This document shows, in pieces, positions 3,151 through 57,944 of a DNA stretch of 64,000 bases. The notes under the pieces were generated by a model. It was given only the letters and a program-made list of their open reading frames with translations. It was not told where the DNA came from and did no database searches. Source of the stretch: Saccostrea echinata (Eukaryota); assembly GCF_033153115.1 (NCBI RefSeq), contig NW_026889764.1:12834001-12898000 (forward strand). The letters run 5' to 3'. How positions within the stretch are numbered: position 1 is the first letter of the stretch; the number at the start of each line of letters is the position of its first letter. Position numbers and translations under genes: made by a program.

Positions 3151-6100
3151 ATGATGATCGCAAGACGTAAGTACAAACGTGTTTATATTCATCTGGAGTG
3201 TTTTCATATAAATTCCAGCTAAGAGAAAATTTAAGATCGGCTAGCTTTAAGTAGATATAATAAAAATTTATTAATAAACAAACGTCGTTATTGTAGGGTA
3301 TCCCACACTTTTAGCACGCTTGTTGGTACTCTTCACTCTTTCTACACTGGATATGAGATGTGTGTTGAGTAGCCTATTGAATGAGTATGTATGTTTATAT
3401 ATTGAGTTTATGTAAAATAGCTTTTTAAGGGGGCCGACTGGGATTTTCATTGCGCAATATTTTGCGCAGCATAGTAAAATAAAGCGTATTTACTCTTTTA
3501 AAGCAACTATGTTTAAATAATTTATAAAAATTAACAAATTTAGGAAATCTCAGGTTAAAAAATCTAATTAAGTTTTTAAATAACTGATTTTATAAACGAT
3601 TTTTCAAATGATGGGTAGATAGACGTCGTAATAGTATGTTTTTTGAGGTTATGAAAAACTGAAGTTCTTAAAGCGGGGTCATTAATTATGTCATGAAATA
3701 AAAAGTATAAAATAGATGCTCTTGAAATTTTTAAACATAGGAAATTGAGATTCTCAAAATCATTTTTACCATATTTTTATGTAAATCTGTGGTATCTGTC
3801 ATATTTTGTTGTACTCCATAAAAACAAGAAAATATCATGAATTTTGACATTTTGAGATGCCCCCTCTGGAAACCAGACGGTAGATTTTTGTTTTTCTTGC
3901 ATAAAATGTACAATATAGTATTACCCATCAAATAATATAATTTGAGGAAAAAGTCTACAGTAGCGTTTGTATAATTTGCTCCGAAGTGCTAAAAATGGAA
4001 TTTTTCCATATAATCCTACAGTAAATATACCTGTATTTTGAGATGGTCCCTAAAATAGAACCAGACGGTAGGTTTTCACTAAACTTGGCATATATACTGA
4101 AGTCAATGTAAGGTACTTATGGTATCAAATTAAAGAGTTTCTCTATAGTAGTTTTCACACAATAAAACCTCAGTCGGCTCCCTTAAATACTTTCTTAAAG
4201 CTATCTTTTTTGTGTAATCTAATTCATAATAACTGTAAATAAACACGTTTTACTTTCTATCGTAAAGTGTTCCCCCCTCCTCCCCAGAAAATATTTTTTT
4301 AGTGTAACATTTATTTGAAATATTGCATAAGTAATACATAAATTAATGTTATTTTTCTTCTTAAAGGACAATACCTCCTTATTTTTTATGATTTATGCAG
4401 TTTTTTTAAATGAATTTCAACGTTTTTACTTTGTTTACTTCCTGTTGTCTGCTATAATTCAAAATTAGTGCTTTTGAAAACAATGAGATACGTATAAGGA
4501 AGGAATTTTAAAACCAGTCATAATTTTTAAACACTGAGTAATCCACAATGTGATTTGTTTTCTGTGGAACAAAGCATGGGAAAAAAGAAGAATTTAGCAA
4601 ATAGAAACGGCTGGTCAATCTAGGAAAGTAACATTTACAAATAAAAGAGGCTTGGAAATATCGATAAAAATGAATGACTGATTAAAGTGAATAGGAGTTA
4701 GTTTTCTAGGCCTACCAGAACTTGCCTTTGTTAAATTTCTTTCTTCTTTTAAATTAAAGTGAAATATTAAATAAAAAGTTAAAGTCCATTCCTTGCACAC
4801 GTCTTAATAAGGCTTTCTAATTTTAGAAACACGAATTTTAAACAATAGAAGACGACATGAAGTATAAAAAGTTATAGGGAGATTATTCATAGAAACTTGA
4901 TATACCATAAGAAAGAAGAACTTGATACATCNNNNNNNNNNNNNNNNNNNNNNNNNNNNNNNNNNNNNNNNNNNNNNNNNNNNNNNNNNNNNNNNNNNNN
5001 NNNNNNNNNNNNNNNNNNNNNNNNNNNNNNNNNNNNNNNNNNNNNNNNNNNNNNNNNNNNNAGTGAATTATTTGAGCTTTCTGTTTAAAATTTTTTAACT
5101 TATGTTATGTTAGTTTAAGAGTTGTTGTAAAATGTGCTTCATAAATAAAATTAATTTCATTACAATGTACATCCTTTATTAAAACTGGTGTCCAAATAAA
5201 TACATCTAACTTCTATTCACAATGACAGTGTATTATAAAGGGTCTTTTGCATAGTTTTTGTTCTTCTATGCGACAATTATGTAATTATATAAACCCTGTT
5301 AAGTTAAATATACGTTGTAATTTAAAGGCAAACACTATCAGCTTTGCATTAAAGATTCAGAACATTTGGTAACTTGAGAACACACAAAATGACAATAGTT
5401 ACAACGAATGTCACGTTTTTAGAAGGCTGAATTAATAAATAAAACTTATCGGGCTTGATACTGTACTGAACTAGCCAGGAAGATAGACTGAAATTTAATA
5501 CATTTTCAACAGTGAATTTACACGATCAATATGTGCTGGTCCCAGCTGACAAAGCAAAATGATGGCAGTTTCAAATATCTTTAATATGCCCAACAAAACA
5601 AACTGAATTTGAATTGCGCTACTTATGCTTCATTCCTATACTTCATAAAAATTCTTACAAACAAAGATACATAGCGGGTTCCAGTAAATGTTCTTTCAAG
5701 CCCCTTTCTTCACTCCTCACTAAAATATTAACAACAGTGTATGAGAATCATCAGGAGTAATGCATATATTCGAGAAGTGGTGTAATTCAGTTGTGGATAC
5801 TTAAAATCTCCAAGGAAGTATTAGAAAATTTGAAATCACAAAATTTTACCAAAATCAGTAACATGAAAACGTATAAGTTTTCAACACATTATACAACCAT
5901 TCCCCACGATAAATTAAAGTCCAGGCTTTTTGACATCATAGACAGCTGCTTTTTCTTTTTGGAGATCAAGTCTTCCAACAAACTCTTGGAATTTCCATGG
6001 GTAACAAATTGTGTCTTTTTATAAGCATATTATTATTCTTATTCATATCAAGCACAATTTATTCAAAACCTTGCACATGAGAGTAAGAAAATATTTGCTG

Positions 6101-9100
6101 GGGCCTTCAGCTCGACATTAAGAAATATCGACGACGTATTATCAATAATTACTTCCATTCATATATCAACTCGATATATCCCAGTGAACTTAAAATAAGA
6201 TACCAAGAGTCTAACACATCTGTTTCAAATTTGAATATTTTAATAGAAAAAGACATTAATGGTAGTCTAACAACTAATTTATGATAAACGTGATGACTTC
6301 AACTCTTCTTTCTATCGTCAACTTACCTTATTTACATCTCAATATACCCTTATTACCTGCATATTGAGTTTATATCTCCCAGTTGAATCAATACGCAAGA
6401 GCATGCTCTACGTACGAACAAATTCTAAAACGAGGCAAGCTATTGACAAATAAGTTGATGAAACACTCGTTTGATGTCAGCATATCGCAAGTTCTTTCGG
6501 TTATCAACAAATACAATTTATCGTTAATTCAAATGCTGACTGACGTTTTAATTACTAATTGTTAGACCATTATTAACACACTGAACTGTCTACGGAATTT
6601 CCCGTTTGCCTGATCATGAACAGGAGCACACGGCGGGTTGACCGTTTACTCCATCATGGCATCTGATCCCACCTCTGATCCATTTAGAGGTTCGTGTTTG
6701 CTCTGCTCTCGATTTGTATTGTTTAATGGACTCTTGAGCTTAATTACTGTTCGTTTTCTCCTGATGACGAATAAGTGACGTGACGTCAGAGTTCTCTGCT
6801 AGATGCTATTAATATCCCCAATTATGAATGGAACTGATAAGTACTGTAAAAATCGCCAAGTGAACAAGGTGCATTATCGACCAGACCACAAATAATTATT
6901 TCACTTTGAAAAACAGATTTAATCTTTAATGGTTAATTCTCATTAATCATACCGTATAAGCAGAACTCTTAGCGAGGATTCTATTTTGGCATTTCAAGCG
7001 AGGATGTGGAGATCGCTAAAGTTGAATATCGTTGACTGTGCCTTCTGCGTAGGTGGTAACCATTATTTCAAGGCATCATAGAATTGCTAAAATTTCTTCT
7101 CACTAAAATTAAATACCGATTTTTGAGGACAAATCGCTAAATTTGTGTCTCGCCAAAAATTCCACTCCTACGGTAAAATATATTACTACAGTCTGAAAGA
7201 ATATCAGAAGTGCGGCCATATTCTTGATTTCCTTCCCTTTATGAAGATTGTAGTAAAAACACTCCCTGGCCTGTTATAAAATGCAGAGTTAATAAACTGT
7301 CCGGACAGAGATTGAAACTTCCAAAGTTTCTCCAAGTATGCTGTTTACAATGTATATATACAATTTTTCTAATCTCACATGTCGTCTCAACCGCTCAGTT
7401 AAGATGTCAGAGCCTATGGCACTGTAATACAAAAGGACAGAGGCAAAGCGAAATTCAAAGAATGAGAAAATTCAAATATTTTTTTGTCGTTGTTGTTCAC
7501 TTGTGCTTCGCACTCGTGAAAATTTCCAAAATTCCTGCCCCACTCCAGAAATAGATTCCATAACCAACATTTACAAAATATTGAATATCTTATATATGTA
7601 AGCAGGATTCTCCATCATTTCAAATTTAACTGTGGCGCAAGACTTACACGAAGTGCTAATATTCGCGGTCATTTCGAAATCTAATTCGCGAAGGAACCAC
7701 GAAAAAATTTGAAAAACACCACAACCTCAATGAATCAATAGTTTAATACACAAATGACATTTATTATTTGACAATTTGATTAATAAATTTAATAATAAAG
7801 GCAAATAATCGATATCAAGTAAATATAGTGTAAAACAAAATTGAGGTAGTTTCCAAAATATATACATACTGTAAAAAAGACACCCCACAGATAAGTACCT
7901 TTAAATAAACAAATATAAGCTTATAGAATCTGAAATTTAAAGTACAAATAACAAGTTATCAGCATTAAACCCGATTTTTTTTAATTAAAAAATAAGTTTA
8001 CAAAAGTTAAATTATACAGTGTTTACTAAAGTACACAGGAAATTCTATGAAGTCACACATTCACGCTAACATATTATATCATATTTGCAATTATCGATCT
8101 GAAGACTGAAATATCTAAGAAAAAATACGATTCAAAGAAGTACTAAAGGTCAAGATCTATTAAATGAAAAGTAATTACAGATTTCTTAAATTTGAGAAAC
8201 GAACTCCTTTAGTAATCCATCAAATTTATTGCTTAATAAATTAAGGTGTATTGGGACATAATTTTTAGGTAAATTCAATGAAAACATTTTATTTCTAAAC
8301 ATATTTCTGTTAAATAGCCGTAAGGAGGGGGAAAAGTAGTTTAAATTAAGTTTGACATTATAATGGATCTAGCACAAAAAAAAACAGTCTAAACTACTAT
8401 ATCTTGACCTTAAGCGGTTAAAAGTTATAATATTTTGGTGGATCTATCGGTAAGTTTTCAACATTACAAAAAACACATGATTACGATACACATACGACGT
8501 TAGACTCGCAATTCCAGTGCAATTTTAGAGACTTGGTTATCCGTAGATCTATTAAAGCCTGAATTAAATGATATTAAAAATTTCATTTGTAATTATCGTG
8601 AAGTGTGGAAAAATGGCTAGCAAGTGTCAAGCGAGGTCTAGAGGATAATTAATTATGCAAGCCAAACAATTAGAGTAAATTAACTGTTTAGCATTTGAAA
8701 CTGAAAAAAAACAGTTCGTGATTTGGAGGTTTGTTTGGTTTATAAATTTATATATTTATCTTACTGACGATCTTACTGTGGCGCTAATATTTTAACTGTG
8801 GCGGAACTATGGCGCTAATTTTTTACTGTGGTGCTAAGAAATTTAACTGTGGCGTTAAACGGCCCATGGAGAACCCTGTGTAAGACTACAAAGTTCGATT
8901 TTCACGCTAAAGCCCGATTGTCTCACTAAAGCCCGATGCTTCTGCACCGATCGGTGTCGGTGTCGATACGGACGCTAATGTCCGGTGGTCACGCCAAATA
9001 TTCCGATGGCTCGTTTCCTATGAGACTTAATGCGCTTAAGTGCAATGGTGCGGAGAAACAATCAACGTTTATATAATGTCACAATATTCCGACGTCAATC

Positions 9101-12100
9101 CTTGACGCCGTTGTCCGAATACCGACAGTGTAGTATAAGTCATAACATACGATTTGACCAATTTTGCTTACTGCTTGCATCTATTTGAGATTTTATTCAT
9201 CGCACACCACTCGACCGATAAAGATTAGTTCTTGCACAGTCTTGAGTGATTATGGGATAGCTTCACATCCACCGAAAAGATTAAGGGTTAGCCCTCGCAC
9301 ACTATTCGACAAAATAGAGTTAGTCTCGCACCCGCCAAAAAGATTTATACTATACCCTTGCTCACTATTCGACTGATTTGGGATAGTTTCGCACCCATCC
9401 GTGAGATAAGGGTTAGCCTCGCACCCACTCGAGAATTAGGGCTAATAGTACAATTATATATTTTTGCATATTCTAGTGAACCATTTCACAATAGTGATCA
9501 AATATTCATTTGTATTCATTTAAGGAGGAGAAGGGCCTTGAGCTGAAAAAATACTTGTCATTCAATTTTTTTTTATATTTTGTATATTTATTATTAAGTA
9601 TGTCCCACTAATCTTAAAGCAGTTATATCATTAGGTTTCTTACCTTATTTTGGAGATATTGATTGACAAATACCATGCCCTACAGTATCTAAGTGGAGTT
9701 TTAATTATCCATGTTTCCGGGCGCATTACTCTGTCCATAATGGGATTTTTTTAAGCATACATAAAAAATATCAAAGTGGACATGTATCTTTTAAAATATT
9801 TCAGAGTATAACTAGGATTTAAAATTCAAAAAAGCAAGTTTTGTCTATCACACTGCATCTGGATAGGGAAAATTACGCACTTTTTAAGACAACTTAAACA
9901 ATGAAAATCGTAATTTACAAAAAATTCTATCATTCAATATTTTTTAATTTACGTTGAAATGCAAATCCTTCAAATTATTGATTAACTGTAAAAGTTTCGA
10001 ATGATGAAGCTGACCTAAATATTGCACAGGACATCGTTAAAGACGACATAAGCAGGAAAAAAACTTGTCATGTTTACATTTCTCGAGTACGGGAAAAACC
10101 AACTATGACGTCACATGTAAGCTAAATAAGCAAATTAAGATATACCTACATAAGATTTCCGTCATCAGCCATGCAAAAATAATTTTGTGTTCCCCGTTTC
10201 TCCAAATACTTCATCATATACTGATTATGACCTGTTTGTACATACATGTAATAATACCGCCCCTCTGTTCACCGAGTATGATCTTGCTGTACTAACAGAT
10301 CGTGTATGACGTCACCGACTTGTTGGACGCACAGTTCAAAGAAACAGAGGAGTGGATCAATCTTTTTTCATAATTTGTCAATGTTTACAAGAATGCTAAA
10401 CTTATTATTTTTTATAATATAAGATGGTAATTAAAGATAAAAAATTGTCAAAAATTTATACAAGAACTGATGCTTTACACGTTTTGCACTCATATATATG
10501 GAGACTATGACGTAGTTTAACAAAGTCATGTGACCATGTGTACTTCATCCCCTTAAAACCATCGGACCTTGGCTTTTTGAGACATCAGCACAGAAGTACT
10601 ATGACGTCATAAACTTTAATTTTTTACGCATCTTCGGACTTTGCGTGTCAAACCATCGACTGATTGATTGTATGTTGTTTTACGTCCCGTTCGAGAATTT
10701 TTCACTCATATAGAGACGTCACCATATACCGCGGTGAAGGCAAGTTTAGACCTTTACTCGGCACTCAGGACTATTGGGCAGTGAGGTATCTTTATCGTGC
10801 CTACGCCTGCCATGACATGGGGCCTCGGTTGTTAAAGTCTCATCCGAAGGACTCGCAATTTTCACTTCAAATTGCCGAGTGCTTGGCGAAGGAACAGTTG
10901 CCACCTATTTTTTTATCGACCTAGGTCAGTCTCGGCCAGGGCTGGAACCCACGACCTTCCAATCACGGAGCGAGCGCTCTACCAAATGAGCTACCGTGAC
11001 GGTCTNNNNNNNNNNNNNNNNNNNNNNNNNNNNNNNNNNNNNNNNNNNNNNNNNNNNNNNNNNNNNNNNNNNNNNNNNNNNNNNNNNNNNNNNNNNNNNN
11101 NNNNNNNNNNNNNNNNNNNNNNNNNNNNNNNNNNNNNNNNNNNNNNNNNNNNNNNNNNNNNNNTTAAAGAATTGTGATTTTTCTTCCAATAGAATTGATT
11201 GTTTGGGGAAGATTTTAAGCCAATACCAAAGTCTTAATAGTTGTCCATGGGATATCAGTACGTTTTAATAATATAATTGATACAATTTTATTTCTACAGT
11301 GAATCAATGCTGAAAAATGTTTTATTTCTACAGTTTATCAATGCTGAAAAAATGTTAGGAATACCCATCAAATATTTTATTAGCAACTACATGTTCTGCT
11401 GTAACATGTAACAAAGTAAACTCGGAATGTGATGTACAGGATCAACGAGGCATCAATGTTTCAGTTACAGTGTACTTGTCAATGATTCCTTTCGTTCAAA
11501 ACCACAAGGTGATACAAACCTCATGGTGTCAATGCAAAAACGTTGCTTTTGTATGCAATCTTACTAGTAATATTCCAGGTAAGGGAATTAATAATTGATA
11601 AGTTAATTGGTCGTTAATAGACATTTGTCATTGTAGTAGCACTGACGAAAATGTACGTGTAACAAATAAATATTTGCTGTTTCCTTATAAGTACTAATGA
11701 AATAGAAAAAGTTTAGTTCAATTCAAAATTGCCTGTGATATCTTTGGGACAACCATTTGTAATATTTTAATGTTTGATATTCAATCATTTTAAAAACTTT
11801 TCTGAAGTATGTCTGCGGAGAAAACTGAAGTGTACAATACAATGCTTTTAAATGTTTTATGTATGCACTGAAAAATAAGGGGAAAGATCGATTACAGGTT
11901 ACATAAAGGATCGTGGTATCCTGTTTTTCATATACTGAGTGGAACCAAATCAGATATTTTTGTGTTTAATTATTGATACAGTGCAACTTGATAAACATTT
12001 ATTGATGAACAAGAAATTGTATATAGATAATCTATGTAGTTGTACTTAACTTTACTATCTTCTATCAGTTGTTCATTTTTCACGATAACTTCCTCCTACT

Positions 12101-34724: not shown

Positions 34725-34910
34725 TGAAGATAACGAACAGTCATCGATCTAAAAAAAAAAAAGAGAAATCTATAAACAATACAAATATGTGAACAGGGCA
34801 TAAACACGAACCCCTGGAAATTCCAGAGGTGGATCAGGTGCCTAGGAGGAGTGAACATCCACTGTTCACCTCTCATACCCGACGTGTGGTCCTTGTCATA
34901 ATCGGGAAAA
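34725..34910 (-). mobile_element. Penelope-like element 3' end fragment
   Basis: gaagataacgaacag...ccagaggtggatcaggtgcctaggaggagt. Confidence 0.7.
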
Positions 34911-36421
34911 CAAGTCCTGTGTATAAGTATCTATAGTTAGATATCTCTCATCACATACTTTTTGAGTACTTACTTGCCAAATTTTCATTTTCGTGTAAAT
35001 TTGTCATATCAAAAATTATATTCATTTCAATTATGCGTTCTCTAGTTAACACCTGGAAACTATTTTGACAATTACGATAACAAACCCTGTACACGACTTG
35101 TTCTGGGGCATACATACGAAAACTTAAATTCTTTAACATCTAAATAATTCATTTCAAAATACATAACGCTTCTTTGATTCGCTTCTTGCGATCAAGGTTC
35201 AAACTAACTGAATGATTATTAAATAAAAGAGGTCAATAAAATAACATATTATCTACACACGCAAAACATTACAAGTATAATATGTTACAATGAAGGCCTG
35301 TTCAAAGGTAACATCTTTAGTATCCTCAAAACAATGTCAGTAATGCATTAACACATTTCTTGCAGTTCCTTTATTTTTTCGTTCTCAACCATGATACCAG
35401 TAGATTTTTTATTTCCTAATTGATCTAAGTTTCTAAAATTTTCGAATAGAAATATAAGAAATTTGTTTTCCATTCTGACACTCTGTATGCCTATAGGAAC
35501 TTTTTAAGAATGAATTCCATATCATCTTCACAGTTTTTGTACTTAAAAAGGACTAATAACACTTGGTTGTGCTGTACGTACATCTGCTTGGGTGAAAATA
35601 AAAGGTCAGTTAAGACTTGTATTAAGAAATAGGGAAATTTGTCTTAATTTTTTATCATACAAATCTCACAGGCCTTTAATTGAAATGGATGCCGATTTCG
35701 TGCGAATTTGAAGAAAAAATACTGAGGGTTATACTGATGAGATTATTTGTTGCCTGGATATCTATAGGGCGACAGACGCAGTAAAGATAAATGACTAACA
35801 GTACAGTATTAAATTTCACACAACAAAAAAATTAAATGTAAACGTGTCAGTAAATCAGGTTTAACAGAGCTAGGTTAAAGGTCATGACTGTACCTTGAAG
35901 CAATAATACCGACCAAGTTGGACATTTAAAAGGATTAAACCGGAAGAGTGTTTTTATTTATCCTGATGTTACGATGTACATGTACATAAGTGTTAGGTAA
36001 GTAAAAAGAACCATGTTGAAGGGTGACGTTTTTGTTCAATCTTTAAATAATTCAACGATTGTTTGTTTTTTTCTTTTTTTAAACAAAAATTGCGATTCTT
36101 ATTTCAGGAATTTCTTCGTACCCTTCTTTTCTTGCATTATTTATGTGAGAGCAAACTTTATAAAGTCGCAGTCTACAAATGATTTCATCGATGCGTAAGT
36201 ATTCATATCTTCAACAACATGTATGTATATACATATTCCATGGATAAATGAATATACATGTATATTAAAGAGGTCTAAGCATAAAAGGGGTATTTCCATA
36301 AACTCATGTGATTTTGATTTCACGCTTCGCCTACCATGTTTTGACGCCTTTAAAATAACAGTCTGTTGTACATCTATGATGTATGTACTGTAGGGTTTGT
36401 TGATGTCGCAGCTATGTTGCT

Positions 36422-36916
36422 TTAAGGTCAAGATCTAGTAAATGACTTTAGACTGTTTTTTTTTTTGGTGCTAAATCCATTATGATGTCATAATCAATAT
36501 AAACTTTCTTTTTCCCGTACTAAGGCTCTGATAGAATTATGTAGAAAATGAAGTATTTTCATGGAATTCAATTTGAAATCATGTGAAAAGTAAACCCGAT
36601 ACCTATGTTCAATATAATATTATTTCAAAGAAGAGGCTAAGAACTTACAAATTACCATTTTCTGAGAGACTGTAGGCAATCTGGATACATTTCCTTTGTC
36701 TGATATGGAAAAAACTCCTATATTCATGACTGGTTTTCTTAATTTTTCATTGAAAATGACAGTTTAAAATATGATTTTTCGTCTTGTTTACCTACAAATT
36801 ATGCCCCGATACACCTTATATGACCAAGCTATAGTTATAAAGCACCATTAAAGGAATTTATTCCTCAAATTTGAGGAATCTGTAGGCTCCTTTCATTTAC
36901 TAGATCTTGACCTTAA
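36422..36916 (-). mobile_element. TTAA MITE family A (reverse orientation)
   Basis: ttaaggtcaagatctagtaaa ... tttactagatcttgaccttaa perfect TIR. Confidence 0.85.
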
Positions 36917-38164
36917 ATTAATTTAAACATACTATTACGAGCTAAGTTTTGATCCAAATCCGTAAACTATAGGTAAGTAGAGCCCGACCGCGAAATTAGT
37001 TATATCGAGCATTTTTCTAAAATCACATGACTTTGTTGATTTCGTGACGGATATTTAGTACTAAAATTGCCCAAAAAATGCATCGGTACAAGTGATTACT
37101 AGCTACGATTAATGTAAACTTTTTGTTACATAAACAAATTAATCGTATCTTTTTTTATGATATTTGCTGGGTGCAAGTCTGAATTTTACTTGTACAGCAA
37201 TTATTTCATGAAAAACCTCACCTTACCTACACACATACGGATATTTTCACTCTACATGTACATCGCAATTTATAAAAAAAAATATCACACAATCATCCCA
37301 ACAAGATGCTGTTAGAGAGCAAGCTTCTTACATGTACATAAATACTCACATATTATCTTCAGTTTATCCTTACAAATCACTTGTGCCAGTCTGATATGTA
37401 CACGATTTATAAATTGTAACTTCGGAAGTGTAAGGGGGAACATTTCGATATATATACTTTTACAAAATAATGTTTTCAATTCTATAACAATATCTAAACA
37501 AGGCGTATTATTTCTGTGTAAAAACAGGTTCGTCAGGTATCCTTAAATTTATTGTTCACTCATAAATGATTGACGTGATTTCACAGTGACTTCATAAGTG
37601 GTAGACATGTTCAACACACTCAATATATACATGTACCATTGAGGTTGGAAAAAATCAATCATTTTATGGATTTAAACTTTAGTACATAACATATGCGTTA
37701 TAAATCGGTCTCAAATGTTAATTTAAGTAATAAGGTGTCATTTTAAAACCTTTATCGGGACGTACATGTAATTACGGTTTGGCATGTGATCAAAAGGCCT
37801 TTCGGGCTTTATGGGAATTGATCACATGACCAACCCGTATTTACATCCCGAGAGAGTCTAAAAATAGAATATTATTTCTTAATGTTACCTTTTTGTTATT
37901 GTTTTAATAGCTGCATATCAGACAAGGGGAAAGAATCACGATATTACTGTTAATGTTCGCCACCATAACAGCGCATTGAAGCTTAAAACGACGTAAAGTC
38001 CAAACATCTGAATGCCACATTGACATAAAATCCATTTTACATGATGTAAAAGTAATGACACTTTACCCGTTAAGTCTCAAGTTTGCAGTACCATGACATC
38101 ATATGTTATTATGACGTAATTTTTAAGAGCCATTCTTTGTAATGACTTGAACTTTTATATAGGA

Positions 38165-39830
38165 GCTGTGGCACGCATAGTCTCAGAATTTCTCCAAACT
38201 CTTAATGATAAAAATCTTTGATACCGTTAACTCAAATCAGGCAAAAATTGGTTGCTATGTGTCATGGTTACCATAGCAACATGTCCTAAAATTTGAAAAA
38301 TGGCATTTTTCACCATGTTCAGAGTCCCAGTTAACGTTTGCAGCAAAGCAAACAAGTGGCAATGACTGTTTCTGAAAATTGAAGGCCTGGTGTCTTAAAT
38401 GCATGATAAACATGTTTGGTAAATCATCTATAACATACGTTACTATGGAAACAAAGTATTCAAAAGTAATAATTTTGTTCATTAAATTTTATAAAGTCAT
38501 ACACTTAACAATAAAAACAATTATAGGTTGAAATGCAAGCAAATAATAGAGAAGAGATCCTTGTAACATATACCAAGGACAAAATATGATATTTCTTATA
38601 GGTTGGCAATGGTTGCCATGGTTTTAATACCACAAAGGGATTTTAAATTTACTCTCTTAGTGTTTTAATCTTATCCTATCTTTTTAAAAAGCATATTTCT
38701 ATATAACTGATGATCAATTTTTAAAGGCCTTGGTGTGACCCTAATTTTCACATTTCAAAAAATTCAAATTCAATTCTTTAAATAGTGCGTTGCTATGGAG
38801 ATAAGGCGAAAAAAACATGCATAAAAATCTGAAAAATACTCTGTTTCCTTGGATACGTACCGTTGTATGTAGATTCCCAAAACTTTAATGATTGATATAT
38901 GTGAACAACTAACCTGACTTTGAATTTTGACTATCACCCAACCTCTAACTGGATGCAAAAAGCTGGCACAAAGGGTCTAATATTGACAAAAAATTAACAA
39001 AATCGAACATTTTCTCTTCTTGGTAACCATAGCAACAGTGTTGTATTTTTCAACAACCTTTATCAATATATGATATTCAACTTTAGTTCTACGAGATAAG
39101 TGCTATTCAAGGTGATTCAAATGATATTTTTCTTGATTAAAAGGTTGGTAAATTCCTAAAGCAGCAAAAAAATATCACTTTAAACAACTAGTACGTTGTT
39201 TCCATGGTTACACTGCAAAGTAACAATTAATCTCAATTTTTCCTATGTTGTCGGTGTTGCAAGGTCCTAAGGATGCATATGTGCCAGTCATGAATTTTAT
39301 TGTTTTCCCTCACGATAGTAGCATTAACCCAATCATAGCAACAGATTTTGCATGGTAACACTGTGTTACCATGGCAACCATGAAAGTTATTTTTAGAATA
39401 ATATTGCCAATACCTAATTACATGAGGTCAAATATTTTTCATTGTTTTTCTTACGTTGTTGATTGAGTTTGATCATGTAACATCTATCATTTGTGGCTAT
39501 AGAGCGTTTTCAGCATTTTTCAGCATCTAAAATGTATTCCAAATGTACCCATGGTTACCACTTACTTAGAGATAAATTCTAAATAGTTTCTTAATAGCAT
39601 AAGTGTCATGTTTTTGGGAGAATGGTTTGTTTGTTTTTCTATGTCTTTATTAAGGCTTAATAAAGATTTAAAGTGGCTGAAAATCTCAATTTTTTCATCT
39701 TTTCTGGCTGTTACCATGGCAACCAAGACACATAGCAACGAAATTTTATTTGATATATGTTTCTGGTGTCAAGTTGTAATAATGGGCAAAGTTTCATCAA
39801 AATCGGTGACCATGCGTGGCAAAGAAGTTT
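38165..39830. mobile_element. Non-autonomous DNA element rich in ccatggcaac/gttaccat motifs
   Basis: Imperfect TIR ggcacgcatagtctcagaattt / aaatcggtgaccatgcgtggc; many dispersed RTTRCCATRG motifs. Confidence 0.55.
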
Positions 39831-39852
39831 AAGTGGTTACAGAGAATCGCTA

Positions 39853-40570
39853 TTAAGTAGTTCGAGGAGATAATCAAGTACGATTTAATGTAAATGTCAG
39901 AAAGTAGGTGAGGTTCTCAGAATTCAGTTGTTTTTCATATAGAGTTCTCTCGATCTTGTACTTTTGATAAATGTATGTAAAATGAAAACTGTTTAGGGTC
40001 ACAGTTGTTATGGAAACATGGACATAAAAAATTTCCTAGAAACCGGTCAATTTTTCATGTTGGTGGTAACAAAATGTATACTACAGCAACGATATTCTTA
40101 TTTACTGGTATAATAGAGATACACATTTTCAGTTTATCAAAAAACACAAGTTATAGGTATTAGATTTAAAGATAGTTCTGTGGTTGACATTAGTATATAT
40201 ATCTTTATATGTTTTTGGATTTTTGATGATTCAGCAATTTTAATGATATTCGTTAATTTAAAATTGTAATCAAGCTATTATAGTCTTTGCGTGTATCTCG
40301 AAGATTTTCCTTTCAGAGTTTGATTTTAAAAGCGCTTTTTTTTTTACCTAGCAACAAAAATTTGAGTTTTGATAAACAAGAACTGAAAGTAGCAAATTAA
40401 AAAAAATGGCATAAATTGGTATAAATTGTTATCTTTTAGTACCAGAAACAACACTTCAACATTTCACAATTTTGGGTAAAATCACCGAATTCTGAGAAAC
40501 CTCTTATGTCTTATATACTCATTTTGTTTGATTTTTACATGGACTTGACTTAACTTTTCTGAACTACTTA
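39853..40570. mobile_element. MITE (taagtagttc/gaactactta TIR) containing a nested GAG-terminated TIR element (39910-40503)
   Basis: Inner TIR gaggttctcagaattc / gaattctgagaaacctc. Confidence 0.65.
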
Positions 40571-40594
40571 GAAATGAGGTCATAATAATCACAG

Positions 40595-43500
40595 ATGCAG
40601 TTAGATGGTGCACTGCGATATTTTACGGATATTCTTATCCTAACTGCGTCATTCTCTCAAAATACTTATGGCATTTATTTGAAGTAATTGACAAAATAAC
40701 ACTTATTTGCCTCAAAATATATTTTCGTATCATGATAATACCAGGTTCCAATATATAGCAACAAAAAAGTTGGGGAGGGGATGACAAGTCAGCCAAAGTT
40801 GAAAATTTCCATTCAATATGACCAGCAAAAGATTCTTTAAAAAACTCCCACTTGGCCCACTCACTCAACCCCATTCCCACCACTATTACCTGCCTCGTTG
40901 TTTCAATTTCCAGTTGATAATTAAACCAATTAACACCGATTTCTTTTGGAGCTTTCAAGAATACTTATTGTTATAAATATTAAATATGTATATATCTCTT
41001 AAAGTCTTATTACCACAGGTTCAACTGCTTGGGATCTGTGGTGCAGGCATACAAATCCTTTTCAAACGGTTGTGCATGGAATATAGGTATGTTTGTTAGA
41101 CTGTAAACAACACAAACCTGAAATAAAAGATCACATAAAACTAAGCAGGCAATTTTTGATTGCCTAAATGTAACTTGATTCAATTCCCATGATGTGTGTT
41201 AATGTAGAAAATGATACGAGGGTCACGTATTAAAAATATTATTTGTGTTTTGTTGCCTTAATACGGAAGTTAAATGAAATTATTTGAAACATTATTAGTT
41301 TAGTTGCAGAGTATTTTTAAATGACTTTGCAGAGCAAAGTTCACGACAGGTACATGACGTTATAGTTTATTACACAATAGAATGTGGGTAAAAAAAATCT
41401 ATATGTAATTTGCTTAAGCGTGTGTCTGTATTGCATGAAACCTTTCGAACATCACTAATTTTAACGAAGAAGGAAAATAAATATGTACGAGGGCTGTTCG
41501 GAAATTGTAATGGCTCTCTTTTCTAATGAACATCTCTTGGTGAAAATTGGTATATACATTTAAAAAACACTAACAATATATAAAAGGAATAAAATAATTT
41601 AAAAATATGTTCCCCTGTTTATGTTATACCAGTGCAGTTGATGGTAGGGTTATCCGGCGTAGTCACGTAATCAGATAATGGAAATAAATACAATTTAATT
41701 TCTATTTCATTTTATGCAAGTTTGATAGAATTTAGGCAAGAAATACGGAGTTCATAAATAAGTTTCATTACGGTATAGAAATCTGGTTACGACAGCAAAA
41801 TAATTTTTCACATGTTTTTATTGCCGACTAAATAACATTGACCAGCGGTGCAAAGGTCTGTCCTGCATGATGCTTGTCAAGCTGTATATGACGCTTCATT
41901 TACTTTTACATTTGGGTAGCAACGACACATTTTATTTTTTTTAATTGTCCAAGAAAAGAGAGAGTTTGATTTCTATAATAATAAATAAAGATGACCAAAA
42001 AGCAAGAGCGAGAAAAATCTACAGCTAACATGACGTTAAAATGACGTAGCGATGCTCATCCATGTTTTAGACATATGCAAGTTTATTATCTCACTGGTAC
42101 TTATGTAATGGTCATATTAACTAGAAATTATACACATTGGTACCATTTGTTCATGATAAAGTGTTGACGAATTTTCATGAATTAATTTGTTTCTTTTATA
42201 GAGTAAAAATATAGGTCTCAATAATTTCCGAACAGTCCTTGTTCATAAATAATATCTCTATTTCAAAGTGTTGGCATAGATGTGGATAATCTCACCTTCA
42301 ATAAATCAGTAAAGCTAAAACGCTTAGATACAGAGGATTTTTGAAGAAATATTTGCTTGCACGTTTTACAACCTCACCATAATAAAGTGTCATTTTTTGA
42401 TCATTTTAAGGTTTATGTTTGTTTTCTCTTGTCTTAAGATGTGACCTGTTCCAATGATGAAATCAGCTGTCTCAATTCGAAACAGAGTTGTAAATACTGG
42501 AGAAAGTTCAACAAAGTCAAAGTTTCTTTTTCCCTACAATTATCATCATCCATTTTTATAAATGACAGCAAAGAACTCACAAAATTATCGAAACGATGCT
42601 ACTGTGAAGAATACTTTATCAACTGTTCAGTTAACAGTGAAATTCTCATTAACAATCTCGGTAAGATTCAATTCTATATTCTATATAAAAGTTGCTCTTT
42701 TATTTATTTATTTTTTTTTTTTTTTGGTCTTTTTTTTTTCTTGTAAAAAGGCATTAGTTGTATCTACCACAAGATCTCAAATAAATTAGAATATTTGGAT
42801 TGATGGACAACAAGATTTAATTGTTATTAATACTGAATGTTTCTTTTCGTTTTTCCCCTATCCCATTAGTGCACGAGGACACATGTATTACTAGTCCATT
42901 ATTCACATCGACGACCAAAGAAGGTATTTCTATATTAAATGATATGGTAATAATAAGAATAAGCTATATATATTACCAAGGAAGTCATTGAAATCTATAC
43001 AAAAGGCAGTCCCTTCATTAATGCAACTAATAATCAATTGAAAGTTTAAATAAAGAGCTTATGGCAATTCGGCCATATTATGTTTTTTTCTACTATACAT
43101 AGCTAACTAAATCAGTGTTCATTGTAAAATGTACTTGGATTGAGGAGATTCATAATTTGACACGATGCAAACTTTATTATGGCTCAAAAATATATTCCTT
43201 AAAATCATTTTAAGCCACGAGAAAACTTATCACAACAACATTGAGTACCGGCATAACAACAACAAGGACGAAAGATTCTTCAACAAAATCAAAGAATACA
43301 TCAGAAAATAAAAATTCAACATGTTTACCTGAACTAGGTATAATTAAATTTTTAAACTTTTAACTCAAATCAGTTACATCCTTGTAAATTTCGTATGGTC
43401 TACCAATATGTCTGATATATCCATAGTATACATTTTAAATCACTACAAATATTTCCCATTTCAGAGTATTTAAAAGACTCTACGGAATATGAAACAGGTA

Positions 43501-44036
43501 AGTTTTTTTTTATTGGTATAAAATATATGCCGGTCCTTCGGATGAGACCGTATAAACCTAGGTCCCGTGTCGCAGTAGGTGCTGGCACGAAAAAGATCCC
43601 TCACTGCTCAATGGCCGTAAGTGCCGAGTATAGGACAAAATTTGCAGCTCTCCACAGGCAAGTGGTGGCGTCTCCATATGAGTGAAAAATTCTCGAGAGG
43701 GACGTTAAACATTAGACAAACAAACAAACAAAATTTATGCATCTGATATGATTTTTTTGAATCGCTTTCATACAGCTAGTGCCTGGTTTGAATTGAATTT
43801 TACATTAACAGAATATGGTGCAATATTTGGCGCACTCCTTGGAGGTATCGTACTGGGGGCCGCGGTGGAATTCCTTATCACCACCGTATTACGAAGAGCA
43901 AAATTAAGGAGGGATCAGAAAAAGTAATTTAATAGAGATACATGTACAACCCTCCCTGAAACTTAATTTCTATTGAATATTCCTGATGACTTTTTTTTTT
44001 TATTTTAATTGCAATATACATGTACAACAATTTCTA

Positions 44037-44072
<36 letters not shown>

Positions 44073-46771
44073 TAAAGAAAATTTTCATAGCTCATTCGAA
44101 CGAAGTAACGAAATAATTCTTAACATCTATATGTAACTATTGTAAAAGCATCAGTATAAATCATCATTGACTCACACCTTTTAGTTTATAGGCTTTTCAT
44201 TGAAAAATACATTTTGAGAAAAATCTACATTGTTGATATTTGTTTTATCATGATTTTAGACGTCGACTGTCTTTGCAGGGATACTGGGGACATCAAGCTC
44301 ACAAATAACCCAGCTTATGACTGTAGTTCACTTAAAGTTTCTGTTGAGGGTGATTATGATGAGAAACCCATGGGACACTTGTATACACAAATTACGCATC
44401 AAAACGTATGTCCTTTGTCTTTTGATTATTTGTGGTATTGATGATATGCTACATGTAACAAAAACGTCAAATTGTCTTTGCTAAAACATATTGATAGATT
44501 TAAGAAAATGCTTTCATTTTGCAATTACATGTAATAAAAACTTGAAATGCATATACACATTTTCTTGACATTGCATTTAAATAACTGTCTACATGTAACT
44601 CCTTTCTAACATAATACAGGATAATCTAAAATATCTTGTATATTTTTTAAGGATAATAATTAAAAGCTCTCAAATGGCAAAAAAAAAAAAAAAAAAAAAA
44701 TTAAAGAAACATATCACATTTTAATATAATTATGCTTTGACATTTTGTACAGTTTATATCACATACAATTTACGTACAGTACCAACCAGACCCAACTCTG
44801 ACACAAAGCAGTCCCAGAGCAGTCCCGGGGACTGCTTTCTGGGACTGCTCTGAGAGCAGTCCCACAGCGGTCCCAGCAGTCCCAGAAAGCAGTCCCAGCG
44901 GTTCCAGCAGTCCCAGTGGGCGGGGTTAATTAATTTAATGGGCGGAGCTTACTCAGAAATGAGATCATCAATAAACAATGTAACTATAAAAGGCAGTTGA
45001 AATTGATGATCCATTTCTTTCTGAGCAGTATCAATTCTCATGCGACAGTCATTTTTGAACTGTTAAGAAAATCGCACTATGCGTATAGAAACAAATAATG
45101 AATATTGAACAAAGAAGACGTTCACACCTACAAATAACATGAATATTTAAACACAGCTTTGTGGTATATTAATTTTTCACCAAAATAAATCAATTTCTTA
45201 ATTTACTGTCATTGATATTGGTTTCCATATTCATTTATTTATTTTTTTTTTATAGAAAATTAAATTTGAGTTATTTATTTTCTATCAAAACTAGCTTTAA
45301 ATAGACCTTATAATTGAAGAGCAAGGCCGATTTCCATACTATACTCTGAATGCAGTTTTCTTACGTACTGGAGCTTTTGAAAAATTCTTTGAGTATTATA
45401 TTTCAGTCATGATTATTTTCACTGACTTGCCAATTTAATTATCGTTAGATTATCTATGTAACAGAAAACAATAATACTTTTATTATATAAACGTTTAAGT
45501 GTATATCTGTAAATCACGCAAATGGAACCCTCAGATTATGTTCAAAATTAATTAATCCCGAAATAAACGAAGATGTTTTGCAGTACATAGATTGAAATTA
45601 GTGTCATTGTTGACCAGCATGTTCAGTGATGTGTAACACTGATACCTAAATAACATGCATTGACTTTCTGCTAATCATGCCCGAAGGCGATTGAAACCTC
45701 AGGTGTTGACACTGTTTTATACATTTGTATTGCTTTTTATTAATCGGCCAGGAAAACACAAACAAAACAAATAAGAAATAGGTCACAATTCCCAATAATT
45801 TAAAAATGTTTATAAGTTTACTCTTTTAATAACTTCTTTATAAATCAAAAACAAATTCATAAATAGATCCCCCAGTAATTGTTCACAAATATAATTGTTT
45901 AAATGACTGAAGAATGGTAGAATAATTTTATTTCATGGTCATTTAATAAATTATTAGGTTTTATTTGAGGGCATTAAAAAAAGCATGGAATGCTCTTTTT
46001 TAGGGTGGTTTTAGCTTTTTCAAGTTACAAAAAAAAATCCAGCACAGTACGTCCCTTTGAATATCTTATTGTAATGACAAGTTTGTTTTTTTTTAAATAG
46101 TGCTAATGCAAACTTTGAGTACATACCGTAAATTGACAGCATTAATTAATTAAATAGGCCTAGATATTTTTTTCAAACACCTGTATTAAAGTTTTAATTA
46201 GCATTAATTAAATGAATAGGCCTTAGAGAGATATTTTTTTTTTCAAATACCTGTATTAAAGTTTAATTCAAGGGATAGAAGTCATCTCCTGACTTCCCTT
46301 TTAACTAATTTCATTTTATAAAATTAAATTCTGGATTACAATTGTGTAAATTTACAGCCCTGAAGACATTTAATAATTACATGTATATCTATCTCTACTT
46401 ATTAAAATGTTGTAAGAAATCCTTGGGCATTTTTATTCTTTATCTTTAACACCTCTATGCTGAAAGTAAACAAAACAACAACAGGGAGCCTGCAAATTCA
46501 GAATACACAAGGGGCGGAGCTATCATACTCAGAACCTTTTTCATGCATGAGTGAACAAAGCAGTCCCAGGGACTGTTGGGACTGCTGGGTCTGCTTTCTA
46601 GAGCAGTCCCAGAGCAGTCCCACAGCGGTCCCAGAGCAGTCCCACAGCAGTCCCAGTGCGGTCCCAAAGCAGTCCCGGGGACTGCTTTCTGGGACTGCTT
46701 AGGTGTCAGGTTGGGTCTGGTTGGTACTGTACATTTACTTTTTAAACTACAATCCTATCTTAAAGAATAAT

Positions 46772-46812
<41 letters not shown>

Positions 46813-48342
46813 CAGCACATGATATATTCTATTTGATCAGTATCTTTAGGTGACGGTTTTTCTTATAATTTGTGATCACTTTTATCCACACGTCTAGACT
46901 GGTATTTCAAACATGAGATTCTTAAGGGGTATTAGTTTTGGTGTATATACTTTGTCTCCGAAAAAATTCCATACATAAATTTAAGTTTAAGGGGCTGAAA
47001 TTAGGGGTTTGTTAGGAAACATCTGAAGTCTTCCTCAGCTCTCGATGTAACCACTTTCAACAAGCATTCTGAGATTATTGCATTAGCAATACTAGTCCCC
47101 TACCGGCAAGTGTAATCTGGTTCCCGTTCAAAATTGAAAATGCCATAATTCCGTCAAAAATCAATGAAGCGGAACGAAATGCAAACTTGATCTATAACTC
47201 ATCAAGGTAAAGTCACATACCAAAAATCAGCTAAATATCTGCAAGCGTTTAGAAAAAAAGTGCAGAAAACCCCGAAAAATTGAAAAGGTCGTAATTCCGA
47301 AAAAAATCATTGAAGCGGAAAGAAATGCAAAGTTAATCTGTAACTCATTAAGATACACTCACATACCAAAAATCAGCTCAATATCTGCAAACGTTTAGAA
47401 GAAAAGTGCGGAAAACCAAGTGGGACAGACTGACAGACAGACACAGGGACAGCTAGACAGACAGACGGACGGACAGACTCAGAGGAAACCTATAGTCCCC
47501 TCCGGTTTCACCGGTAGGGGACTAATAAATAGCATTTTTTTGACGTTATTTTGTCATGTCAGAGTCAGCATCACTCAGTTTAAACTTATACATTAAAATG
47601 ATGGGCATGTCAGATTAATTGATCATAAATTAAATATGTACTATGATCGGTGACATTTGTTGCTGAGGATCTAAATAGTTTTAGTTATTTAGGAACGCCA
47701 TTGTAATCAGATAGAATCGAAGTGTTTCTAATAGTATGTGATCTACATCATGATTAATACTGTAAACCATATATTATATGCTTTCTTTTTGTCCGCGAAC
47801 GGTCGGTTAACTAATCCCCCATAATTAAGTAATTTCGTTATTGAAGAAATGATGAACAACCGGTTAGCGACAATAAATATCCGTAATCAAAGGTTGAAAA
47901 CGGATTTCACGTTGATTCTTCGTATTGGTACATTATGTATAATATCTGACCTGTATTTCATATTTGTATTTCATATTCCATATTAAGCTCGAATACTGTT
48001 CGTTATCTCCACATATTTCATATATATCTATTTTAGCAATGGCCAAAGGTTTCACAATCAAGACATGGAGATTATGAAAATAGTGGACAAAAGGCAGGAA
48101 TGATAGTTGATCAATTATACAATCACCTCAACGAAAAAGAGGAAATAGATCGGGCGGACTACTATGACCATGCTGGTGTTGTACAAACGTCACCTCAACT
48201 GGAAGATTATGGAATTTTAAAGTCGAATTTTAAAGATTCCAATGCATACACAGAAGTCGTAGGTGAAGGATTTAAGACCAAGGAAAACCATCATGACTTG
48301 AAAGAGAAGAAATATTTAGTTCTTGAAAAAGAACTTAGTTGA
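40595..48342 (+). CDS. Paralog 4: ~377-389-aa type I transmembrane Cys-rich receptor-like protein with 3 stalk exons and longest Tyr-motif tail
   Basis: Exons 40595-40683 (MQLDGALRYFTDILILTASFSQNTYGIYLK), 41019-41086 (FNCLGSVVQAYKSFSNGCAWNI), 42439-42660 (VTCSNDEISCLNSKQSC...RCYCEEYFINC), stalk 42870-42923, 43215-43337, 43465-43497, TM 43776 (or in-frame 43812)-43923 (YGAIFGALLGGIVLGAAVEFLITTVLRRAK), 44279-44405 (NPAY, LYTQI), 48037-48342 (YENS, YNHL, YDHA, YGIL, YTEV, YLVL). All GT-AG, same phase pattern as paralogs 2/3. Confidence 0.85.
41488..42241. mobile_element. Mariner-type MITE
   Basis: ta-cgagggctgttcggaaatt ... aatttccgaacagtccttg TIR. Confidence 0.75.
43530..43731 (+). mobile_element. 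5'-truncated SINE between stalk and TM exons of paralog 4
   Basis: ccttcggatgagaccgtataaacc core through (aaac)n tail. Confidence 0.85.
44777..46729. mobile_element. TA-TSD non-autonomous transposon (Tc1/mariner-type CAGT ends) with 11-bp gcagtccca subterminal repeats
   Basis: Perfect inverted match tacagtaccaaccagacccaac / gttgggtctggttggtactgta including the TA. Confidence 0.9.
47089..47527 (-). mobile_element. Helentron-type HINE (second family)
   Basis: tagtcccctaccgg subTIR, duplicated internal unit, (gaca/ggac)n microsatellite, terminal hairpin tagtcccctccggtttcaccggtaggggacta. Confidence 0.8.
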
Positions 48343-48481
48343 AAAACATACCAGTTTATATAACTGTAATACTTGTTTGTTATTAAGGATAATCGTGTTC
48401 AAATATCTAAACGTGTAAATTCACAATTTGTTCAATAGAAAAATGTTTCTTCGTTTTTTGTTCAAATGTAATTTGATTATC

Positions 48482-51403: not shown

Positions 51404-51758
51404 TGATTGATTGATTGATTTTATGTTGTTTAACGTCCCATTCGAGAATTTTTCACTCATATAGGAATGTCATCGTATGCCGGCGAGGGGTCCAAATTTA
51501 GACTATACTCGGCACTCAGGGACATTGAGCAGTGAAAGTTCTTCATCGTGTTAACGCCTACCGTGACATGGGACCTAAGTTTGTAAGGTCTCATCCGATA
51601 AACCCATGACTTTCACTTTTAGTACTGGGCGCTTGGCGAAGGAACACTTACTACCTATGTTTACATCTTAGGTTTGACGCAGCGCAGCGAACGAAAATCT
51701 AACCCGGGCCTACCAGTCACGAAGCATGCGCCCTACCACTTTGCTACTGTGACTGGTC
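51404..51758 (-). mobile_element. tRNA-derived SINE with (AATC)n tail
   Basis: Collinear with 10661-11004. Confidence 0.85.
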
Positions 51759-57530: not shown

Positions 57531-57944
57531 TATAATACAAAAAGTTTTTTTAAATAGTTTGATGTGAGCAGATCTAGAATCGAAGACAACGACATGAAAC
57601 CCTTTTTGAATGTCTAGAAGACGCGTGAAGAGTGTACTTATGAAAATAATTTTTATTGATCATTGAATTGATAGAATCAGCCTGTAATATTGTAAAGGGC
57701 TCAGCTTCAGAATAATGCATCAATTACTTGATTATCTTGGGTTGAATATATTCCTGAATTTTAAAATCGTTATCGGGAAATTAACGATCTAGGAAAATTG
57801 TCTATGGAAGTGTATTTTATTGTGTCATTAGTTTTTTTCTTATTTTTTTATTTTCGTTTTTTTATTTAGTTTCAGGTTTTATTTTATAATTTCGATTTTT
57901 ATTTAGTACTTTTGTATTAGTTTTGGTTTGCCCTATTAAATATT

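Follow-up and report, generated by a model that had tools for sequence, protein, structure and literature searches.

The window analysed here, 64,000 nucleotides (nt) of DNA of the oyster Saccostrea echinata (contig NW_026889764.1 of assembly GCF_033153115.1, positions 12,834,001 to 12,898,000 of the forward strand), carries four paralogous genes that form a genuine tandem cluster. These genes, P1 to P4, lie on the plus strand at positions 3151-48342; all coordinates below are those of the window. The cluster probably encodes oyster-restricted type I receptors that combine an eight-Cys head, a stalk, a glycine-zipper transmembrane (TM) segment and a phosphotyrosine-type tail. The paralogy is seen in the self-comparison of the window and in the open gene models. 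P2 is transcribed and spliced. The relatives of the genes are confined to oysters, and the ectodomain contains no known domain. As a described family it is new, and no described homologues of known function were found.

Oysters have no adaptive immunity. They carry many lineage-specific surface receptors, the signalling of which is barely charted. The analysis provides a verified gene structure for a cluster unannotated in S. echinata, a compact Cys-locked ectodomain without a relative in Pfam or the PDB, and a conserved tail module tying the cluster to at least 20 other receptors. If the tail couples to phosphotyrosine-binding (PTB) and Src homology 2 (SH2) adaptors, the cluster would be a tractable entry to signalling of the Draper or ITAM (immunoreceptor tyrosine-based activation motif) type on new mollusc recognition domains, as the ectodomain is small, the genes are four, and there are clear orthologues in the farmed Magallana gigas and Ostrea edulis. 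If the role is non-immune, this is an ordinary lineage-restricted orphan receptor family. Any immune or engulfment role is hypothetical.

Tandem genes and transcription of P2

Pieces of the plus strand recur in a constant order in the six-frame self-comparison of the window. The Cys piece of P1 at 11359-11595 matches P2 at 20026-20292 (71% over 76 amino acids (aa), E 1e-34) and P3 at 30338-30682 (E 1e-13). The TM piece 13617-13802 pairs with 23279-23422, the piece with the NPAY motif at 15154-15447 with 23474-23726, and the Tyr-rich terminal piece 15535-15783 with both 23941-24161 and 48037-48339. The Cys exon of P4 has diverged beyond the reach of plain BLAST, and a profile was needed. Compared with the profile of P1-P3, it has an hhalign probability of 89% and E 2.3e-6, with 6/6 Cys in register. 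The identity among the ectodomains of the tandem paralogues is 29-70%.

The gene models were built from splice sites and phases read around each recurring piece, and the frames were checked on the joined models. All four spliced models are open, and every intron is GT..AG. The shared exon plan outlined in the preliminary description is largely borne out. Each gene has a phase 2-1 exon with two Cys (65, 65, 65 and 68 nt in P1, P2, P3 and P4, respectively), a phase 1-1 Cys exon with six Cys (195, 201, 210 and 222 nt, in the same order), one or several stalk exons of phase 1-1, then the TM exon, the juxtamembrane exon with a phase 0 end, and the terminal exon. Two details have to be amended. The TM exon ends in phase 2 in P2-P4, as had been claimed, but in phase 1 in P1. 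The single signal exon is tentatively retained for P3, as one exon of 83 nt, whereas P1 and P2 have two exons (16 + 88 nt) and P4 most likely also has two (17 + 87 nt). The earlier lengths of the open reading frames were reproduced: 338 aa for P2, 269 aa for P3, and 389 aa for P4 with a first exon of the 40595-40683 type. The model of P4 has 389 or 394 aa, dependent on the choice of the first exon. P1 is open, at 328 aa, only with the acceptor 12375.

The junctions of P2 were tested with RNA. Contigs of four public runs from two studies (X1-X4) were mapped onto window positions 18900-24200. All seven predicted joints were found in spliced contigs from the four runs: 19000 to 19123, 19210 to 19889, 19953 to 20045, 20245 to 22021, 22149 to 23304, 23421 to 23569, and 23707 to 23904. 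They are all GT..AG, and the exonic identity of the contigs to the reference is about 98-99%. The joint 19000 to 19123 proves the two-exon signal region for P2. The joints 20245 to 22021 and 23707 to 23904 bridge, in frame, the gaps 21493-21644 and 23727-23895, respectively. Thus both gaps are intronic in P2, and the flanking exons are continuous in the mRNA.

The coding part of P2 exon 1 occupies 18985-19000. Its joint to 19123 is present in X1, X2 and X3, and the transcript reaches in the 5' direction at least to 18900. Then follow the signal-peptide exon 19123-19210 (88 nt), the 65-nt exon 19889-19953 with two Cys, the Cys exon 20045-20245 (201 nt, six Cys), the stalk exon 22021-22149 (129 nt, phase 1-1), the TM exon 23304-23421, which encodes the glycine zipper GAALGGVG and ends in phase 2, the juxtamembrane exon 23569-23707 with NPAY and YSSI, and the terminal exon 23904-24164 with the stop codon at 24162-24164. 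Each exon between the first and the last has joints on both sides. The joint from the TM exon to 23569 occurs in all four runs, and the joint from 23707 to the terminal exon in X1, X2 and X3.

The Cys exon is identical to the respective part of the RefSeq protein XP_061179037.1 (LOC133187634, S. echinata, 139 aa). This protein consists of P2 exons 1-4 and then continues beyond the 20245 donor with intron sequence (...GKGIYNGFSKIVLNKI, window 20246-20295). Judging by this alignment, it is a truncated annotation of P2; the truncation was probably caused by the assembly gaps. The cluster had been called hidden. This is correct for S. echinata, where only the truncated model of P2 was found, but not for other oysters, where orthologues are annotated in RefSeq as 'uncharacterized protein'.

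The introns of P2 at 20316-21377 and 22440-22800 are covered by many diverged contigs of high depth (85-95% identity) with a GT..AG joint of their own, 20807 to 20930. These contigs stem from repeats transcribed at other genomic sites and do not belong to P2.

Ectodomain, relatives and tail

The ectodomain of about 90 aa contains eight Cys, arranged as C-x12/13-C in the short exon, followed by C-x4/6-C-x6-C...C-x-C-x6-C in the Cys exon. The pattern is invariant in all four paralogues and in all orthologues aligned. The suggestion that the ectodomain is neither of the immunoglobulin (Ig) nor of the EGF type was confirmed. Single exons and full-length orthologues matched no Pfam family beyond noise at E <= 1, and no Pfam model of Ig, EGF or EMI domains at the same threshold. 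NCBIfam yielded TM-driven noise only. Sequence searches of the PDB, with a single protein and with a profile, gave no match to the ectodomain, and the search of the ESM Atlas gave no usable match for the family.

When Foldseek and VIA-align were run with the full-length model, the TM helix dominated the matches. Therefore the ectodomain-only RefSeq fragment was folded and searched, using AlphaFold2 with a 15-row family alignment. The model is confident over residues 31-120 (block predicted local distance difference test values 76-93, also given as 85-93), where it predicts a helix that runs to residue 47, together with four strands in antiparallel arrangement. The Foldseek search of this model against the PDB found nothing below E 0.3. 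The best VIA-align match among 48,161 representative chains had Z 3.5, which is under the tool's own noise level. One orthologue of the P4 type, A0A8W8LXT8 (P0006), is labelled in UniProt as a zona pellucida (ZP) domain protein. This candidate was rejected: neither P0006 nor P0021 matched any Pfam family at E <= 1, and the ectodomain is shorter than the ZP domain of about 260 aa.

The Cys-exon profile has four copies in the 923-Mb genome of S. echinata, all of them in the window. The profile of the four Cys exons, compared with 1.84 billion representative proteins, produced eight matches, and the named ones are all 'uncharacterized' proteins of the oyster genera Saccostrea, Ostrea and Magallana. 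The best match is XP_061179037.1 of S. echinata itself (LOC133187634), and the others are S. cucullata LOC134281802, O. edulis LOC125655326 and LOC130047848, and M. gigas LOC105342948 / A0A8W8LXT8, A0A8W8M2U1 and the fused model K1QDZ1. The latter are true members of the family, as they have the same eight-Cys pattern, the stalk, a TM segment of the GxxxG type, NPAY, and the YxHLNE / YYDHA / YTEV tail. Thus the initial term 'bivalve' family was too broad. A described family of known function, named beforehand as the match that would speak against a new family, did not emerge: the named matches of the protein search are all oyster 'uncharacterized' proteins, and no Pfam family was matched. No representative for S. 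echinata P3 or P4 was found among the 1.84 billion proteins, and these two genes are seemingly unannotated. Literature searches on the locus names found no paper.

Exon-only profile matches to the named orthologues have E-values from 1e-30 to 1e-5. In full-length comparisons (blastp of the joined models against the fetched proteins), the identity to the named orthologues is 33-61%: P2 is 61% identical to P0002 (1e-151), P4 39% to P0012 (2e-75), and P3 33% to P0003 (3e-42). Even between the two Saccostrea species the orthologues are only about 60% identical, and the tree branches are long. The maximum-likelihood tree consists of two clades with 100/100 support each, and each clade contains Saccostrea, Ostrea and Magallana. 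Clade A is formed by P1, P2 and P3, the latter on a long branch, together with P0002, P0003 and P0008; clade B contains P4, P0004 and P0006. Since both clades span three genera, the cluster is older than the split of these genera. With its four copies and these clades, the cluster is old, small and conserved, and not expanding. A tandem arrangement in other oysters, too, is suggested by accession numbers that lie next to each other, by a common contig and by the fused model K1QDZ1.

Selection was estimated by exon for a single pair, P1 and P2, as the Nei-Gojobori ratio of nonsynonymous to synonymous substitution rates (dN/dS). The ratio is 0.09 for the two-Cys exon, 0.21 for the six-Cys exon, 0.37 for the TM exon, 0.46 for the juxtamembrane exon, and 0.84 for the terminal exon. 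Thus in this one pair the ectodomain appears to be constrained rather than diversifying. At the same time dS falls from about 1.8 in the 65-nt exon and 0.76 in the Cys exon down to 0.09 in the terminal exon. This decrease from 5' to 3' suggests gene conversion, mosaic duplication or a younger 3' duplication boundary. In the P2 transcripts, 7/7 well-supported coding differences from the reference are non-synonymous, which are too few for a test: S22T, K24N, Q68E, S72T, I86V, V237M and Y273H (window 19170, 19178, 20077, 20089, 20131, 23660 and 23964, respectively).

The models have a hydrophobic N-terminal core and a TM region consisting of a single hydrophobic GxxxG segment followed by basic residues, and AlphaFold2 places a predicted helix at the TM segment. 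These features are consistent with a type I topology, with a signal peptide, a single TM segment and the N-terminus outside. The stalk exons are all of phase 1-1, and skipping one of them preserves the frame. In the S. cucullata, O. edulis and M. gigas orthologues, it is precisely the stalk region that varies among the RefSeq isoforms.

The tails carry tyrosine motifs, as had been noticed at the outset, and these motifs are conserved across genera. They include NPAY, YxxI, KVSHVxPIVRYEN (with YxN), IY[DN]HLNE, YYDHA and YxxL-x8/9-YTEV; clade B adds the C-terminal Y[FL]VLEK. In 5/5 full-length orthologues the eight Cys recur without change, as do NPAY, YxHL and YD. Among the paralogues, the NPAY/YxHLNE/YYDHA/YTEV tail is present in P1, P2 and P4, while in P3 SSIY stands in place of NPAY and the short terminal exon is unrelated. 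There are ITAM-like pairs, YDVL-x8-YTEV in P1 and P2, YGIL-x9-YTEV in P4, and YDHL-x11-YDHA. None of them conforms to the canonical pattern YxxL/I-x(6-12)-YxxL/I, as the second half-motif ends with V or A.

The terminal-exon profile matches 11 places in the genome, and 23 places after the addition of four outside copies. The matches are grouped at C15:15.0-15.4 Mb, C11:1.42-1.82 Mb and C29:38.66-38.74 Mb. At these places NPAY and GxxGG TM exons adjoin the tail exon, and the ectodomains differ. The tail-sharing loci carry YNHLNE, YYDHA and YFVLEK, and one annotated gene of this group, LOC133184828, has a short EGF/EB-like head instead of the eight-Cys head. As the tail and TM exons occur at 20 or more other genome places and the Cys exon only in the window, TM-plus-tail is the common chassis, and the eight-Cys head is special to the cluster. 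By their exon content, the tail-sharing loci look like a larger receptor family on one signalling chassis.

Candidate mechanism and alternative explanations

The suggested mode of action is as follows. After the signal peptide, a disulfide-locked eight-Cys head would bind a ligand. The Thr/Ser-rich stalk would be N-glycosylated, and its length could be varied by in-frame skipping of phase 1-1 exons. The glycine zipper of the TM segment may promote dimerisation or clustering, and the clustered tails would be phosphorylated on tyrosine. The phosphorylated NPxY would then recruit PTB adaptors, and YxN and YxxL/V would recruit SH2 proteins. P3, which lacks NPxY and the central part of the tail and ends with the PDZ-ligand-like -SHL, may signal differently or act as a modulator.

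This scheme resembles that of Draper, CED-1 and MEGF10. These are type I engulfment receptors, and their tails join NPxY, bound by the PTB adaptor CED-6/GULP, with YxxL or ITAM-type motifs bound by Shark/Syk. Similarly, the tails of the cluster carry conserved NPAY plus YDHL / YDVL / YGIL. However, there are no EMI or EGF-like repeats in the cluster, the eight-Cys head of about 90 aa is unrelated, and the ITAM-like pair is non-canonical. By analogy, the proteins may work like Draper/MEGF10 or ITAM receptors, yet they are not members of these families. Another oyster receptor with a single TM segment and a tyrosine-motif tail is CgIgR of Crassostrea gigas, which has five Ig domains and the classical ITAM YxxL-x(6-12)-YxxL (PMC6994640). 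The cluster differs from it by the absence of an Ig domain and, again, by the final V or A of the second half-motif. Signalling from ITAM to Syk to ERK was demonstrated for CgIgR in oyster hemocytes (PMC6994640), and thus the downstream machinery exists in oysters.

The cluster had initially been compared with KIR/LILR, teleost NITR and Hydractinia Alr, with which it shares the tandem arrangement of type I receptors, differing ectodomains and variant tails. The latter clusters belong to the Ig superfamily, and they are large, copy-number-variable and fast-expanding. The S. echinata cluster, by contrast, has four genes, is non-Ig, is conserved across genera, and its ectodomain exons are under purifying selection in the one pair tested. 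Thus the analogy is weak: it fails on the fold (no Ig), the size (four copies in 923 Mb), the turnover (two conserved clades) and, tentatively, selection. It is accordingly unlikely that these genes are a fast-diversifying immune or allorecognition cluster of this kind, with ectodomains driven by pathogens or conspecifics and paired tail variants. The divergence of the tandem ectodomains to 29-70% identity, the tail variant of P3 devoid of NPxY and the central motifs, and the identity of only about 60% on long branches between the two Saccostrea species would all be expected under rapid diversification, and ITAM-Syk signalling is present in oyster hemocytes (PMC6994640). However, four genome copies and two clades conserved over Ostrea, Magallana and Saccostrea leave no place for a lineage-specific burst, the two ectodomain exons, compared between P1 and P2, give low dN/dS values (0.09 and 0.21), and neither Ig nor any other known recognition fold was matched. 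The amino acid changes in 7/7 P2 transcript differences agree with diversification, but this number of variants does not suffice for a test.

A non-immune surface protein, such as an adhesion, developmental or endocytic cargo receptor, is about equally improbable. In such a protein NPxY would mainly serve for internalisation or PTB docking, as in APP or LDL-receptor relatives, and the TM segment might be cleaved in the membrane. The TM-juxtamembrane profile does weakly match APP C99 in a PDB profile search (E 0.006-0.009 over about 80 positions), and full-length orthologues have weak Pfam matches to TM_ErbB1 and EphA2_TM. Both APP and the cluster have a glycine-zipper TM segment of the GxxxG type followed by a cytoplasmic NPxY. 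However, the cluster has no E1/E2 ectodomains, the remaining tail is unrelated, and the match is below homology significance and below any curated threshold, being driven by TM composition. This is a resemblance of motif architecture and not evidence of homology. Conserved orthologues and purifying selection also fit a housekeeping-like role in the cell; on the other hand, several conserved YxxL/YxN motifs in addition to NPxY point to SH2 signalling and not just to endocytosis, and a core developmental role would not be expected of a family restricted to oysters. An artefact, that is, chance reading frames, transposon-derived fragments or dead pseudogenes, is hardly credible. The stop and frameshift at the canonical stalk acceptor of P1, a decayed copy of a terminal exon at 58033-58182 and the repeat-filled introns could be seen as its traces, but the precisely spliced transcripts already refute it for P2, the frames are open over 7-10 exons in four genes, the orthologues from three genera retain invariant Cys and motifs, and the ectodomain dN/dS is well below 1.

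Thus four oyster-restricted receptors with an eight-Cys head and a phosphotyrosine-type tail remain the probable interpretation. Several facts weigh against it. The ITAM-like pair, ending with V or A, is a non-canonical ITAM. Motifs as short as NPxY and YxxL also turn up by chance, though here they are conserved across genera. The read support covers the junctions of P2, those of P1, P3 and P4 being predicted from sequence, and the placement of the first exon is tentative in P3 and in P4. Finally, the structural model was built on a shallow alignment of 15 rows, and a new fold does not follow from the absence of a match.

A broader possibility, which we regard as speculative and somewhat doubtful, is that the helix/sheet unit with its eight Cys has a new extracellular fold and that the cluster is one arm of an oyster-specific receptor system. 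In this system the shared TM-plus-tail chassis would be exon-shuffled with differing heads in 20 or more genes in several chromosomal clusters, and would serve as a hemocyte recognition or engulfment set built without Ig, EGF or lectin domains.

Models of P1, P3 and P4, and repeats in the window

The coding part of P1 exon 1 is predicted at 3151-3166 (16 nt, ATGATG..., donor GTAAGT), in a block conserved with 18985-19000 of P2. The signal-peptide exon 3297-3384 (88 nt, phase 1 to 2) has 76% DNA identity to 19123-19210 of P2. The 65-nt exon with two Cys (11193-11257, phase 2-1) starts 30 nt past the assembly gap 11006-11163. All three are supported by the open model. The putative junction 3384 to 11193 is phase-compatible, and the respective 7.8-kb intron contains this gap and the gap 4932-5061. 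The Cys exon 11384-11578 (195 nt, six Cys, phase 1-1) was identified by self-comparison and the profile.

The predicted stalk exon of P1, 12375-12521, uses an internal acceptor, with which the model is open. The acceptor 12368, homologous to that of P2, leads to a TAA stop and a frameshift in this exon. Thus the stalk exon appears to be damaged, yet it can stay in frame. The TM exon 13702-13797 (96 nt) is the one ending in phase 1, unlike those of the other paralogues, and this is offset by a shifted acceptor in the next exon. The latter is the juxtamembrane exon 15299-15426 with NPAY, for which the alternative acceptor 15290 is also in frame. The terminal exon 15535-15786 contains YEN, YDHL, YDHA and YDVL-x8-YTEV and ends with the stop codon 15784-15786. 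One P1-like spliced contig of run X4 at the juxtamembrane-to-terminal junction hints that P1 is expressed.

The signal exon of P3 is tentatively placed at 29309-29391 (83 nt, MANKTLCFLLFVCSG...). This is the only upstream exon with an ATG that has a hydrophobic core and a phase-2 donor, and the resulting model is open. The 65-nt exon with two Cys is 30189-30253, and the Cys exon, found by self-comparison and the profile, is 30360-30569 (210 nt). The Thr-rich stalk exon 32440-32508 (69 nt) has no competitor of phase 1-1 in the interval. It is followed by the TM exon 32647-32764 (118 nt, open model) and by the juxtamembrane exon 33028-33157, in which SSIY replaces NPAY. The terminal exon 33260-33394 is short, ends with -SHL and is not significantly similar to the family tail. 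The idea that it retains the start and the end of the family tail was dropped (hhalign E 0.074, probability <1%).

For P4, the proposed coding part of exon 1 is 35980-35996 (17 nt, donor GTAAGT) and the proposed signal-peptide exon is 36108-36194 (87 nt, donor GTAAGT). Their sum, 17 + 87 nt, equals that of P1 and P2, 16 + 88 nt (104 nt). With these two exons the protein has 394 aa, and from residue 15 on its N-terminus can be aligned with the O. edulis orthologue. The score against P0012 is 229 bits, compared to 216 bits with the alternative first exon 40595-40683 (389 aa), which was downgraded in favour of the two-exon start because of this lower score. The start of P4 most likely has the same two-exon layout as P1 and P2.

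Further predicted exons of P4 are the 68-nt exon 41019-41086 (two Cys, phase 2-1), the Cys exon 42439-42660 (222 nt), matched by the profile to P1-P3, and three stalk exons, 42870-42923 (54 nt, with VHEDTC... shared by the O. edulis orthologue), 43215-43337 (123 nt, Thr/Ser-rich) and 43465-43497 (33 nt). The TM exon is 43776-43923 (148 nt, open model), the juxtamembrane exon 44279-44405 contains NPAY and YTQI, and the terminal exon 48037-48342 encodes YEN, YNHLNE, YYDHA, YGIL-x9-YTEV and YLVLEK. In the last intron, 44725-44950 and 46406-46770 contain a Ser/Pro/Ala-rich repeat (…SSPTAVPEQS…), open in several frames on both strands. These blocks look like a low-complexity minisatellite and not like coding regions.

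The 3' end of P4 with its downstream flank, 47936-49800, was copied at 57890-60060 by a segmental duplication. The copy includes the decayed terminal exon 58033-58182 on the plus strand, interrupted by two TAA stops. Profile scans found no matching Cys, TM or juxtamembrane exon near it.

An element of about 300-400 nt is repeated in introns and spacers at 10664-10986, 27273-27487, 29575-30007, 43403-43775 and 51415-51612. The only Rfam match in the window, a tRNA on the minus strand at 27388-27460 (29.5 bits), falls inside one of these copies. The element is probably a tRNA-derived short interspersed element (SINE), as judged by this match; Rfam and ARAGORN found nothing in the window beyond it. 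Decayed transposon fragments are present between and inside the genes at 5760-6780, 16590-17180, 24300-28300 and 31400-32350. They include reverse transcriptase (RVT_1) fragments at 27547-27843 and 31927-32268 and a DDE_3 transposase fragment at 27979-28212, all on the minus strand.

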